From: Oculina patagonica
Taxonomy: Eukaryota
DNA: 64,000 nucleotides
Assembly (NCBI RefSeq): GCF_052425735.1
Contig: NC_135760.1
Location: 8,866,001 to 8,930,000, forward strand
Direction of reading: 5' to 3'
Each line of letters opens with the position of its first letter. Positions within the stretch are counted from its first letter, which is position 1. The translations under genes and the position numbers were made by a program. The notes under the pieces were generated by a model. It had not been told where the DNA came from and ran no database searches. It saw nothing but the letters and a program-made list of their open reading frames with translations. Below are positions 31,758-57,820 of the stretch, piece by piece.

Positions 31758-34700
31758 ATGAAAAACCATGCGGTCTTCCGTCTCGTTCTGGTTGTTGGGA
31801 TTTTTGCAGGAGCTGTGCGTATTGGCCATGCCAAGTAAGAAGATGTTTTGAATTGATCTGGCCGGAAAATGTTCTAAAAATGTTCTTATTTTCTTTTCCA
31901 TTTTTCCCCATTTTTTTAAACAAGACGGTATTGCAGTAAATCAAATAATAGATCTCAATCGGGTATGTTCGCAAGTTAATTGTACAAAAATGAATGTGAA
32001 ATGATGTTAAAAACTAAACTACATTTTGAAAGCGCTTTGTATCGAAAATTTAAGTGCTGTTCTTTCCCAAATTTCATCATGCCCTCAGATTCCGCCTTTC
32101 TCAGCTTTGCAATGTTAAATTTATATTTTACTAGTGGCTGAATAGTAGAATATAGTATGGTAGAATTCTTAAATAGATCATGTACGGTAGAAATAATTTA
32201 AAGTGTATAAATGCCGACTTTCCTTTCCTTCTAGATGCAAAGATCGTCGCGATGAATTACAAACTGAACTCAAAAGGTAAATGGAAAGGATTTGTCAGTC
32301 TGTCATGCAGTCAGTCATTCTAACAAATATTTTATATAGGAAACGTAAGATCGAAACGAAGTTTAGGTTTTGTTTCTGTTTGTTTTCTAAAATTAGTCCG
32401 GCTACGCAAAGAGCAAAGAATTGAATATAAAAAAGTGACCAATAGCTTAGCCTTTGTTATTAAAACTTTAATATGTCTGCAAGAGGATATTTTAACATGA
32501 CGAACAGGCGAGACCCGAGCTTGCAATGGGGTCCATAGAAAGAATTTTGGCCCCCAAATGAGTGCTCATTAATTGTGTGCGCCATGCACTGCAAGCAATC
32601 TCACAATGACTATTCGATCGGCTTATAGCTCTTAAATTTTAAAGTGTAGAGCGATGAATAGCTATAGAATTCTTCACAGTTTTATTACATTGTTGAGCTA
32701 GCAGGTGGAGCCGTAGAAATTAAGGAAACCACTAACCTTTAAATTAAATAATATGTAGTAATCAGTATATGGACAATTGATATTAAAGGTCGAGATACAA
32801 CATGTCGCCGGGACAAGTTGCCGTAACATGTTGCCTCGTGTGACATGGTGCATTTCTGCTAGAATCTTTGTTACAGCTGCGACAGATTTTTGTCGCTGCG
32901 ATACCCCCTAAGTTTGAACTCGTGCGAATGATTGAGCGAAAGCAGTGTTGTAGCAGCGTGTGCACACTTCTGCGACAAGTCGCTGCGACAAAATATGAAT
33001 TACCTAATGAGAGAGCGTCATGTATTTTTGCCACTCTTCCAAATTCGCTGGGTGTGCATCGAAAAAGGGCCTTGTCGCAGCGACTTGTTTTGAAGCAGTA
33101 CACACGGAGCGACTTGTCGCAGAGACCTGTCGCAGAGACCTGTCGATGCGACTTGTTGCCTAGTGTGTCCCGACCTTAAAAGCCAGGTAGGACTGAAATG
33201 AGTTGAATTAGACTAACACGGATACCAATAAGAAAAAAATCTCCGTGATTGCGTGATTGAGAGTTTTAATGCTGTTGTTTTCTCTCTGGAGTCTGAAGTT
33301 AGGTATCAGCCTTTATACTTTTGTATACTGCTCTAATTAGTTTTAATTAATCCTGGTTTCTTTTTACTCGGTCCTGTAGGTTATTTTCAGTAGGTTTCAC
33401 AAAGGAATAAGTAATTAGTTGTGGTGTTCTAGGATATATGGCTTGAATTATACAAAGTGAGATGTGACCAAACTTTAGGATAACATAAGACGTATTGCAA
33501 GAATTAACATGATCGTTAATTTTTAGGCTAAAAGAAGAGTTTGCCGCACTAAGGAAAAACGTAAAGGAAAAGGAAGAAATCAATCAGTTAACCAAAGTAG
33601 TAAGTTTCTCGTTTCTCGGCGGTAGCCGTTACTTTTTTTCTACTTTCTTTTTAACTAGTCAAGATGTAGCATGTGATTTAAAGGTATCGGTGTAGAAAAT
33701 GTAGTGGTCTGGGCACATAATCCTTCACGCTCAACATTCTACAATTGTTTGTTCCATAATCATAATGGTTTCCCTTGTCTTTTATTTTTAACGCAGGATC
33801 TTCTTAAAACGATTGCGGGAGGCATTTCAAAGTAAGTACAACATCACGACATTTATGGCATTTTTAACGACATGCGCCGTCATGTTTTGCTTGTTATGTT
33901 CGGGTTGGCAAAAGGGTCAGGGGTGAGCGTCAACAAGCTAGGGCTTTGCCTCATGCCTCGCCGCGCCGATATTTTCCGGCCACAAAATCCAGCAATTAAA
34001 TCAAAGCAATTTCGCGCATGCTTTGGATATACCGCAGTTTGTTTTCTCTACTTTTTAGCGGAGCTCTTCAGCGCGCGCCAGGCGCGGAGGGAGCACCAGG
34101 GTAATGCGGGTACGAGAGAATTTGTAAACCCAGGAGGCCGAAAAAATTTGGTGCGTCGCCCGACCGCGCGCGCACAGACTCTCGGGGAGGGGGAGGGGAG
34201 TCCCAAGGCAACCCAAGAGAGGGGGGAGGGGAGACAATCTTCTGCCTCCTTCGTTAACCAGAGAGAGTCGACAAATGAATTGGACACAAGTCAGACAGCG
34301 TCAAAACAACGATCCGCGACCAGATCAAGACAACGCGGGCCAGAAAGGGTGCGTGTTTTGAAGTTGACCGCTGACAAGGAAAGAGTCCGCGGGCGAAAAA
34401 AAGAGAAACCCAAAAAAGAGAGAACGGCTACCCCGCTAAAGGCAAAAGGAAGAGGAGAAAGGGGGAAGAGGCCAGGGGAGAAACGAACAAGAAAAAGAAG
34501 ACCCGAAAAAAACCCGCCCGCCCCCCCCAAAAGAAGAAGGAAAAAAAAAAAAAATGCGAGAGGTTTATTTAAAGAAAAGTGAGAAGTACGCGCCACACGC
34601 CAGTTAGTTGCACTGTACACCTTTAGCACCTATAGAAGTTCTCAAATTCGTCAAAAAAAAATAATAGAAATTTAATTTCATAAATTAGAATGCCTAATTA

Positions 34701-56950: not shown

Positions 56951-57820
56951 AAAGTTCCATTCATAACAACTAAAAAAAGATCTGTTTGCTCTGACAAACA
57001 AGTAATTTACCCAAAACATCATTTATGATAAGCGTTTAAACCGTATCTATCCAAATAACTATATGTAACGTAAAAACAAAACGTTTAAATATCCTTAATC
57101 ATTAACAAAGGAGCCCCTCCCAGGGGGGTTCCTAGCCTGCATACCTGGCGGGATGCGAGTGCATTGTTTATGGCGAACGGGAGAGACGGAACCGCTTCGC
57201 CGCTCACGCACGCGGGCTTAGCTTCGCCCGCGATTTTCCTCTCCCCGCGCTAATCCCGCCAGCTACGCAGACTATGGGGTTCCATGTTCACTTGTTCCCT
57301 AAAATTATTTTGTCCATGATTTTTTTGTGATCCATGTTGTTTCCTTAAATCTCAGAAACACAGCTTTTGATTCTGCGTTAATTCCTTCCTTTATTTTCCT
57401 TTTGTTACCTTGTTCCCAATTATTTAATGGCCATGTTCCTTTGTTCCCTGAATCCCCTGGGAGGGGCTCACTAAAGCCTGGTTTTCACTAGCGACGCAAG
57501 CACAAGCGCAAGCACAATTGTGATCACGCAAAAAGGACAAATTTTGATCCCTGTGCTTGTGGTTGCTGCAAGCACAAGCACAAGCATCCAAATGCAATGC
57601 GCTTGTGCTTTTGCTTGAGTCGAAGTCGTTTTCACGGAGAAATAAGAGCTGTTATCCTTGCGCTTGTGCTTGTGTCGCTAGTGAAAACCAGGCTTAAGAT
57701 ACAGAAATATTGACCAGTATATATTTCTTTCTTTTCTTGCACGTTCAGGGGTTGACGGTGGATGGCATCATCCCGATGCCGTTGTCGGCTCCTGGATCGT
57801 ACGACGGGGTCTTCGGTTGA
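51221..57820 (+). CDS. Uncharacterised secreted helical disulfide protein, paralogue C (148 aa)
   Basis: Exons 51221-51300, 51669-51710, 53639-53711, 54051-54085, 54620-54715, 55247-55295, 57749-57820. Translation: MSNRAVFGLFLAVGIIFGAVRTSSHA-RCKTRREELQAERSRVNEESERKRLDLKEKEANNQLTDEYLITTVNEIIASVTDLKMKFEIFCNDCPRALDNCPDIISRMNKRINRLQEKLEEHQKTDGGLTVDGIIPMPLSAPGSYDGVFG*. UTR exon from about 58515; AATAAA at about 58597. Confidence 0.86.
51418..51570. repeat. (CTA/CTG/CCA)n trinucleotide low-complexity tract
   Basis: Seen directly, in intron 1 of C. Confidence 0.9.
52641..52950 (+). mobile_element. tRNA-derived SINE
   Basis: A-box tggccaagtgg, B-box ggttcaagacc, body atagccaactggtctgcctcctgccagttgggatttttaacc, T-rich tail. 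Confidence 0.8.
52990..53276 (+). mobile_element. tRNA-derived SINE, apparently young, with target duplication ataagagg
   Basis: tggccgagtggttagagcg...gggttcaagtccc head; same body as the adjacent copy; ataagagg at 52982 and 53277. Confidence 0.85.
57111..57694. mobile_element. Nested cluster: GAG...CTC element (57111-57469) carrying a TAG-terminated element (about 57133-57274), with a Harbinger MITE (57475-57694) inside its target duplication
   Basis: gagcccctcccagggg ... cccctgggaggggctc; inner tagcctgc...gcagacta flanked by ggggttcc repeats; taa|agcctggttttcactagcgac ... gtcgctagtgaaaaccaggct|taa. All three are absent from the homologous intron of B (about 46945-46960). Confidence 0.75.

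Follow-up and report, generated by a model that had tools for sequence, protein, structure and literature searches.

Damicornin and AmAMP1 are ShK-related antimicrobial peptides of corals, and other peptides of the ShK-like type may act as neuropeptides or toxins (PMC12496222). Damicornin is expressed in the oral ectoderm, and its expression is modulated by Vibrio coralliilyticus (PMC4790380). A stretch of 64,000 nucleotides (nt) of the coral Oculina patagonica (Scleractinia, Oculinidae; assembly GCF_052425735.1, contig NC_135760.1, positions 8,866,001 to 8,930,000 of the forward strand), here called the window, contains exons of this ShK-like type and, downstream of them on the same strand, three tandem genes, g1, g2, and g3, which are the subject of this analysis. 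The products of these genes are predicted to be secreted three-helix proteins with four invariant Cys residues. Much of what is species specific in cnidarian biology, including immunity, venom, symbiosis, and skeleton, is attributed to lineage-restricted secreted proteins, very few of which have a defined fold or function. O. patagonica has long served as a model of bleaching induced by Vibrio and of facultative symbiosis.

Gene models and their public counterparts

The genes g1, g2, and g3 are co-oriented paralogues on the forward strand that span positions 31758 to 57820, and their models were built from the sequence (Table 1). The spliced products were identical, residue for residue, to database proteins of O. 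patagonica. That of g2 is RefSeq XP_078362049.1 (“uncharacterized protein LOC144646367 isoform X1”), that of g3 is RefSeq XP_078362048.1 (“uncharacterized protein LOC144646366”), and that of g1 is the GenBank “hypothetical protein ACROYT_G009203”, the model of which has the same gene end and product length as ours. GenBank numbers the three genes consecutively, G009203 to G009205; its gene models were placed by way of chromosome CM126637.1 of GCA_052425735.1, one locus of which corresponds to window positions 32320 to 60153 with 0 mismatches. Because the products agree with independent public models, chance is excluded as an explanation of the g1, g2, and g3 gene models. The initial annotation had proposed three tandem genes of seven to eight exons with matching exon sizes, matching intron phases, and open spliced frames, and this proposal is thus borne out. 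It had also called the genes unrecognized, which holds only for a prokaryote-style list of open reading frames (ORFs) with nothing relevant across 31.7 to 57.8 kb; RefSeq and GenBank carry them. The genes are confirmed as real and as already annotated, albeit as uncharacterized or hypothetical proteins. No mention of their locus tags was found in the literature.

The exon sizes were 77/42/73/35/73+44/85/66 nt in g1, 77/42/73/35/90/49/69 nt in g2, and 80/42/73/35/96/49/72 nt in g3, with the common intron phases 2,2,0,2,(0),2,0. Exon 5 of g1 is split by one additional intron compared to g2 and g3. All introns of the three genes are of the GT-AG type with a strong extended consensus at donors and acceptors. 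A six-frame motif scan of the window, which has a GC content of 0.32 to 0.41, found NQLT three times (33582, 43647, and 53694) and C-[PS]-[DN]-I-[LI]-S three times (37194, 44694, and 54684), both on the plus strand only. The motif F-C-x2-C is located just 5' of C-[PS]-[DN]-I-[LI]-S in all three copies; it is a looser pattern with unrelated matches elsewhere in the window. The motifs named in the initial annotation were therefore recovered in their order in all three copies on the plus strand.

As judged by blastn, the regions from 41.6 to 47.2 kb and from 50.5 to 57.9 kb are colinear with about 72% identity including the introns, and the g1 copy (31.6 to 39.5 kb) resembles the other copies mainly around the exons. 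Two in-frame indels, one of 6 nt and one of 3 nt, distinguish the last coding exon of g2 from that of g3. A tblastn search with the three products found no further copies or fragments of them in the 64-kb window.

The 3' ends are less uniform between the annotations. In RefSeq isoform X2 of g2, inclusion of an additional exon puts the last exon into another frame. In the GenBank models of g2 and g3, splicing continues from within the last exon to one farther downstream, so that their C termini differ from those of RefSeq; in the case of g2, this model codes for 155 amino acids (aa) and reaches downstream to position 50153 (region 47081 to 50153). The existence of RefSeq isoforms of g2, together with the lack of homologues that could have guided the prediction, implies that transcript evidence may stand behind these models.

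Table 1. Positions of the genes, exons, and conserved flanks in the window. Coding sequence (CDS) exons include the stop codon; UTR, untranslated region.
Feature	Position	Strand	Description	Evidence
g1	31758-39518	+	8 exons, 164 aa	Spliced model, product identical to ACROYT_G009203
g1 CDS exons	31758-31834, 32235-32276, 33527-33599, 33797-33831, 37004-37076, 37182-37225, 38076-38160, 39453-39518	+		Spliced model
g2	42320-47080	+	7 exons, 144 aa	Spliced model, product identical to XP_078362049.1
g2 CDS exons	42320-42396, 42583-42624, 43592-43664, 43869-43903, 44636-44725, 45553-45601, 47012-47080	+		Spliced model
g3	51221-57820	+	7 exons, 148 aa	Spliced model, product identical to XP_078362048.1
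g3 CDS exons	51221-51300, 51669-51710, 53639-53711, 54051-54085, 54620-54715, 55247-55295, 57749-57820	+		Spliced model
5' flank of g1	31458-31757	+	Putative promoter and 5' UTR	Three-way alignment; blastn block 31643-31849 similar to 42214-42411
5' flank of g2	42020-42319	+	Conserved	blastn, three-way alignment
5' flank of g3	50921-51220	+	Conserved	blastn, three-way alignment
Optional extra exon of g2	46116-46160	+	Core, matched codons only	RefSeq isoform X2, 143 aa
Alternative terminal coding exon of g3	58513-58560	+		GenBank g3 model, 158 aa
ShK-like Cys-rich terminal exon 1	6587-6709	+		Six-Cys spacing; no Pfam ShK match
ShK-like terminal exon 2	17206-17328	+		Six-Cys spacing; no Pfam ShK match
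ShK-like terminal exon 3	24439-24564	+		Pfam ShK, 18.8 bits (cutoff, 20.9)
ShK-like terminal exon 4	28442-28558	+		Pfam ShK, 26.0 bits (cutoff, 20.9)

Predicted proteins and their divergence

The proteins of g2 and g3 are 60% identical, and the identity of the g1 protein to either of them is 43 to 45%. Each begins with a short polar start and a hydrophobic run, uninterrupted for about 12 residues, and continues with G-H-A, V-R-A, or S-H-A, which provides small residues at positions −3 and −1. The Kyte-Doolittle mean of the N-terminal 20 residues is 2.4 to 2.6, and a Cys is located one residue beyond the likely cleavage site. Judged from the sequence, the N terminus is signal-peptide-like in all three proteins, as the initial annotation had it, and cleavage is likely to occur after the small −3/−1 residues. 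Alternatively, the N-terminal anchor may be retained, resulting in a type II membrane-anchored or intracellular protein with the four Cys residues binding a metal in a Cys4 site. Two kinds of Pfam matches would agree with such an arrangement: the N-terminal segment plus the charged helix resembles ATP-synt_E (20.5 bits; cutoff, 22), and the CxxC region resembles Fe-S and zinc finger models. Every one of these matches, however, is below the curated cutoff, and the short hydrophobic run is followed by residues of the signal peptidase type. This alternative is hardly credible.

The four invariant Cys residues are at positions 27, 88, 91, and 96, and the invariant turn is N59-Q60-L61-T62 (g2 numbering). 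The loop from F-C-x2-C to the fourth Cys comprises 4 to 7 residues, and each protein ends in a tail rich in Pro, Gly, and aromatic residues. The g2 protein possesses two more Cys residues, 23 and 30, so that three Cys residues are clustered at its N terminus. In the predicted helices, 14 of 21 a/d heptad positions are hydrophobic in all three proteins, compared to 2 of 58 other helical sites. An enrichment of strictly invariant residues at the heptad core was not significant (p = 0.16), which means that the core signal is strong only for hydrophobic character. The mature proteins are slightly acidic with a net charge of about −3, and due to this charge a function as cationic membrane-lytic peptides is unlikely. 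A reading as prohormones was rejected: dibasic sites are absent from the g2 protein and not conserved.

AlphaFold2 models were obtained with the three-row alignment, and helix boundaries were assigned to them by DSSP. The g2 model (mean predicted local distance difference test [pLDDT] of 75.5, predicted template modeling score [pTM] of 0.67) contains helices at residues 5 to 57, 63 to 90, and 96 to 119, and the g1 model (mean pLDDT of 69.5, pTM of 0.57) at residues 4 to 57, 63 to 97, and 105 to 139. The pLDDT of the helical blocks is about 64 to 90, mostly 80 to 90 in g2, and the tail is of low confidence in both models. Both share one topology: helix 1 is joined by the NQLT turn to helix 2, which terminates in FCxxC; a loop then leads to the fourth Cys, with which helix 3 begins, and the tail follows. 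This reproduces for g1 and g2 the anatomy given in the initial annotation. An antiparallel three-helix bundle of about the size of a spectrin repeat is thus predicted for these two proteins.

When the register is estimated from the helix boundaries, Cys27 lies opposite about residue 93, at a distance of 2 residues from Cys91 in g2 and of 2 residues from Cys95 in g1. The partner of Cys27 may differ between the paralogues. A pairing of the N-terminal Cys with the CxxC, as proposed in the initial annotation, is thus complicated by the 7-residue insertion in helix 2 of g1. For a secreted protein, a clamp of two disulfides at the bundle end opposite to the NQLT turn is proposed with moderate confidence, and the bundle would be monomeric. 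The confidence in the gene structure and in the predicted secretion signal and helical architecture is high.

A different use of helix 1 would be conceivable in a protein of the extracellular matrix, the skeletal organic matrix, or the cell surface, in which helix 1 forms intermolecular coiled coils and the N-terminal Cys forms interchain disulfides, leading to oligomers. A high content of charged residues and a weak hydrophobic stripe characterize helix 1, which has subthreshold matches to coiled-coil models of Pfam (TPR_MLP1_2, Rootletin, and others), and the Cys cluster at the N terminus of g2 could serve such cross-links. Moreover, the skeletal protein toolkits of corals are reported as lineage specific, O. 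patagonica included (PMC9532382). In both AlphaFold2 models, however, helix 1 folds back onto helices 2 and 3, and the proteins do not contain the acidic or repetitive tracts typical of matrix proteins. Short peptide strings of the g1, g2, and g3 proteins did not occur in the tables that supplement the report on the skeletal proteome of O. patagonica, which is a weak test, as these tables may contain no sequences. A structural role of this kind is very improbable.

The search for relatives covered sequence, profile, and structure. Word-indexed searches, which require shared 5-residue words, of 5.8 billion proteins yielded the three paralogues only, even in the last search with a three-sequence profile at E values up to 10. 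The exhaustive scan used a 31-column profile of exon 5 from g2 and g3 against 1.84 billion cluster representatives and recovered the g2 protein (E = 1.3e-15). A 457-aa protein with repeated T-I-T-C-x-x-C-G-H-x-F units also appeared with this profile (E = 5.6e-4); it shares the CxxC context only, has a different architecture, and was rejected as unrelated. In Pfam, the matches of the full proteins were confined to coiled-coil or CxxC noise below the curated cutoffs, and the PDB gave nothing with an E value below 0.1 by sequence or profile. Single exon pieces yielded nothing useful in Pfam and the PDB, albeit in a weak test with pieces of 24 to 31 aa. Foldseek searches of the PDB with the g1 and g2 models and of BFVD resulted in generic helical bundles at nonsignificant E values of 0.2 to 0.8 at best. 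Relatives were not found in the metagenome and viral contig collections, nor was an orthologue in Pocillopora, Acropora, or other species found in the protein libraries searched. The family is an orphan within these libraries and may exist in close relatives of Oculina.

Membership in described families of small secreted or Cys-containing proteins was considered separately. There was no match of g1, g2, or g3 to ShK (PF01549) at E values up to 10, and the four Cys residues are spaced differently. No saposin was among the Pfam matches listed at E values up to 10 (for g1, the best 25 of 27) or among the 50 best Foldseek matches in the PDB, and AlphaFold2 shows three long helices. With regard to four-helix cytokines or helical hormones, three helices are predicted here, and no cytokine was among the same 50 best matches. 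Pfam gave no spectrin match, and there is a likeness in shape only to a spectrin repeat (3uun_B, E = 2.8). A CxxC oxidoreductase of the thioredoxin fold does not agree with all-helical models in which helix 2 carries the CxxC at its C-terminal end; the sole thioredoxin-related match was a subthreshold one to Glutaredoxin2_C with 13 bits compared to a cutoff of 32.8. The statement of the initial annotation that no family could be recognized stands after Pfam, PDB, Foldseek, and the large protein libraries.

Divergence is distributed unequally along the three genes. The ratio of nonsynonymous to synonymous divergence (dN/dS, method of Nei and Gojobori) between g2 and g3 was 1.0 overall; for the mature part alone it was 0.87. 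Between g1 and g2 or g3 it was 0.4 to 0.5 in the mature part, at a dS of 1.1 to 1.3. The signal exon had a dS of 0 to 0.04, compared to 0.3 to 1.3 elsewhere. Upstream of each ATG, about 300 nt display a mean column identity of 77% across the three genes, with shared blocks and a TATA-like element. The introns of g1 gave almost no blastn blocks with g2 except for short exon-flanking stretches, and the divergence between g2 and g3 was about 20% in the exons compared to about 28% in alignable intron blocks. According to this pattern, the 5' module of promoter, 5' UTR, and signal exon is held constant or homogenized, and the mature protein diverges fast and keeps its core and its Cys residues. We read g1, g2, and g3 as candidates for co-regulated secreted paralogues with diversifying surfaces. 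A conserved signal exon combined with a fast-evolving mature part is a familiar pattern of toxin and antimicrobial-peptide gene families; a constant 5' module with a fast mature part is equally expected from co-regulated young paralogues under weak constraint.

The latter expectation leads to young orphan genes with little or no function, which are transcribed, contain an open frame, possibly arose de novo or are highly diverged, and drift near neutrality. Homologues were not found in the libraries searched, the g2-g3 dN/dS ratio is about 1 with an exon divergence near that of the intron blocks, and the 3' ends vary between annotations and isoforms, all of which is in agreement with such genes. 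Nevertheless, frames, splice sites, the four Cys residues, NQLT, and the heptad stripe were kept in all three copies despite the high dS between g1 and the others. The older pairs have the lower dN/dS ratios, the lengths of both indels in the last exons of g2 and g3 are multiples of three, and a structure prediction of fair confidence was obtained from only three sequences. Genes with little or no function are decidedly unlikely on balance.

The favored reading is that of lineage-restricted, extracellular, secreted three-helix paralogues, and as a whole it is held with a little better than even confidence. Each gene would give rise to a precursor of 144 to 164 aa with a cleavable signal peptide, and cleavage would leave a Cys at or beside the new N terminus of a mature protein of 120 to 140 aa. 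Helices 1 and 2 should form a hairpin around NQLT, F-C-x2-C should close helix 2, and the next Cys should open helix 3, which is followed by a flexible tail. The four Cys residues would be assembled at the bundle end opposite to NQLT, and this end is most likely clamped by two disulfides between them. The heptad stripe and the Cys residues are retained, and exposed positions change nearly as fast as silent sites. Such a product may be a soluble extracellular binding or effector protein that interacts with microbes, prey, predators, or other cells. The confidence in an extracellular binding or effector role is low to moderate, and that in a specific link to antimicrobial defense is low.

Several points weigh against this reading. 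As the family has no homologues in the libraries searched, comparison lends no function any support, and the g2-g3 dN/dS ratio of about 1 fits relaxed constraint equally well as diversifying selection. The models rest on three sequences, are of moderate global confidence, and count the signal peptide within helix 1. Helices 2 and 3 of g1 are longer, with a 7-residue insertion in helix 2 compared to g2 and g3, and for this reason a single pairing of the N-terminal Cys, with one partner Cys at one register, is not possible for all three proteins. A further point is that g2 has two extra N-terminal Cys residues.

Some additional features of the introns and spacers were observed. Intron 4 of g1 (33832 to 37003) measures 3.2 kb, compared to 732 nt in g2 and 534 nt in g3, and contains, especially at 33872 to 35300, a purine-rich low-complexity stretch with a GC skew of +0.15 and an AT skew of +0.19. 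A 236-aa low-complexity ORF rich in Lys, Arg, Glu, and Gly at 33872 to 34582 in this intron is without a Pfam match and probably noncoding. No Pfam matches were found for the long ORFs within the introns of the three genes or on the minus strand. Between g1 and g2, a unit of 119 bp is repeated twice with 99% identity (40168 to 40407). Intron 5 of g2 carries an (ATTG)n microsatellite of about 19 copies (45464 to 45538), which is absent from g3, and intron 1 of g3 carries a degenerate (TACTAC)n array (51418 to 51570). According to blastn self-matches, inverted repeats occur in g2 introns at 44917 to 44968/45087 to 45142 and at 46237 to 46372, with arm identities of 84% and 80%, and the last intron of g3 contains large insertions relative to g2 at 56300 to 56950 and 57100 to 57690. 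The inverted repeats of g2 and the insertions of g3 look like small mobile-element or hairpin insertions. An internal duplication of exons 5 and 6, both of which open with an I-x-x-L-K-like helix after a phase 2 intron, was rejected after DNA local alignment with shuffles (p = 0.85, 0.56, and 0.09).

Neighboring genes and a possible defense locus

Upstream of g1, four stop-terminated six-Cys exons of the ShK-like type follow one another in tandem on its strand (Table 1), and the distance between the nearest ShK-like stop codon and the start codon of g1 is 3.2 kb. The initial annotation had placed a damicornin cluster about 3 kb upstream. Position and strand of the four exons agree with this statement; the species, however, is Oculina and not Pocillopora, and only one copy passes the Pfam ShK cutoff. 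The GenBank gene calls contain no gene in the 10 kb before g1, and at least the two nearest ShK-like copies therefore appear to be unannotated there. A tentative two-exon model of the nearest copy (28059 to 28158 plus 28446 to 28561) has an open frame and a GT-AG intron; its 71-aa product would consist of a signal, a short acidic piece, and a ShK-like domain. The ShK-like region is interrupted by N runs at 6262 to 6460 (199 bases) and 24586 to 24726 (141 bases), one of which is located directly before the reading frame of the first ShK-like exon. The next gene downstream of g3 starts at about 63969 on the same strand, close to the end of the window; precomputed Pfam matches assign PAN, repeated pentaxin, and laminin-G domains to its 836-aa product. 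Pentaxin domains are present in many pattern recognition proteins.

This neighborhood raises the question of a defense island, in which g1, g2, and g3 would be immune effectors or regulators co-regulated with the ShK-type (damicornin/AmAMP1-like) genes in an antimicrobial or venom locus. The same-strand ShK-like exons at a short distance, the ShK scores of the last and the third copy, the description of damicornin and AmAMP1 as ShK-related antimicrobial peptides (PMC12496222), the conserved signal exon with its fast mature part as in toxin and antimicrobial-peptide families, and the pattern recognition link of the downstream gene are all compatible with it. On the other hand, adjacency is the sole link. 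A blastn comparison of the g2 region including its upstream flank with the whole window matched only the flanks of g1 and g3 and found no similarity near the ShK-like genes, and the negative net charge of the mature proteins is unlike that of cationic antimicrobial peptides. Conserved linkage could not be shown, as no orthologue was found in other species, and ShK-like peptides may instead be neuropeptides or toxins (PMC12496222). A defense island is unlikely, although the young-orphan, matrix, and membrane-anchored alternatives rank lower than it and than the favored reading.

A bolder version would see the three genes as an innovation of the Oculina lineage, with secreted, disulfide-clamped bundle effectors of diversifying surface co-expressed with the ShK-type genes, and perhaps with the pentaxin-domain gene, in a mucosal-defense or venom neighborhood. 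This version is rather unlikely; if true, the immune or venom proteins of cnidarians would gain a structural class that has not been described before. In case expression data tie g1, g2, and g3 to defense, a new structural class would join the few coral immune effectors. If not, they remain one of many uncharacterized orphan families.

Comparison with known systems

The sequence family is new and the fold is generic; lineage-restricted secreted paralogues are common in cnidarian genomes. With regard to shape, the predictions for the favored secreted bundle are similar to three-helix coiled-coil bundles such as the spectrin repeat and designed proteins, which also have an up-down-up arrangement of helices of about 25 to 35 residues with a heptad stripe. 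The closest shape was the first spectrin repeat of dystrophin (3uun_B), with a template modeling (TM) score of 0.76 normalized to the target and a root mean square deviation of 2.7 over 110 columns, and the designed bundles 9rgx and 4tql were among the top Foldseek matches. These bundle matches had nonsignificant E values of 0.3 to 3, that of 3uun_B being given above, and indicate a resemblance of shape only. Spectrin repeats are cytoplasmic, occur in tandem, and are without disulfides, whereas the proteins of g1, g2, and g3 are single-domain proteins with a putative signal peptide and four invariant Cys residues.

Like the predicted products of g1, g2, and g3, the members of the damicornin/AmAMP1 family are small, secreted, Cys-containing coral proteins, and the ShK-like genes of the 64-kb window are likewise arranged in tandem on the plus strand. 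Conservation in both groups is higher in the signal part than in the mature part. The ShK-type peptides, however, are cationic, comprise about 40 residues, and contain six Cys residues, compared to 120 to 140 residues, an all-helical prediction, four Cys residues, and a slightly acidic character in the case of the three paralogues.

Sperm lysin and sp18 of abalone are, as is predicted for g1, g2, and g3, secreted helical bundles encoded by paralogues, with a fast-changing surface and a kept core. Neither sequence nor Foldseek comparison matched them to g1, g2, or g3, and lysin is a strongly basic five-helix bundle without disulfides. The arminins and periculins of Hydra and the SCRiPs of corals are, similar to g1, g2, and g3, lineage-restricted, tandemly duplicated, fast-evolving small proteins that lack homologues beyond a narrow clade and begin with a signal, which is putative in the case of g1, g2, and g3. 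They are short peptides, either cationic or of the beta-rich Cys-knot type, for which antimicrobial or toxic activity has been demonstrated, whereas g1, g2, and g3 code for a larger, predicted helical bundle.

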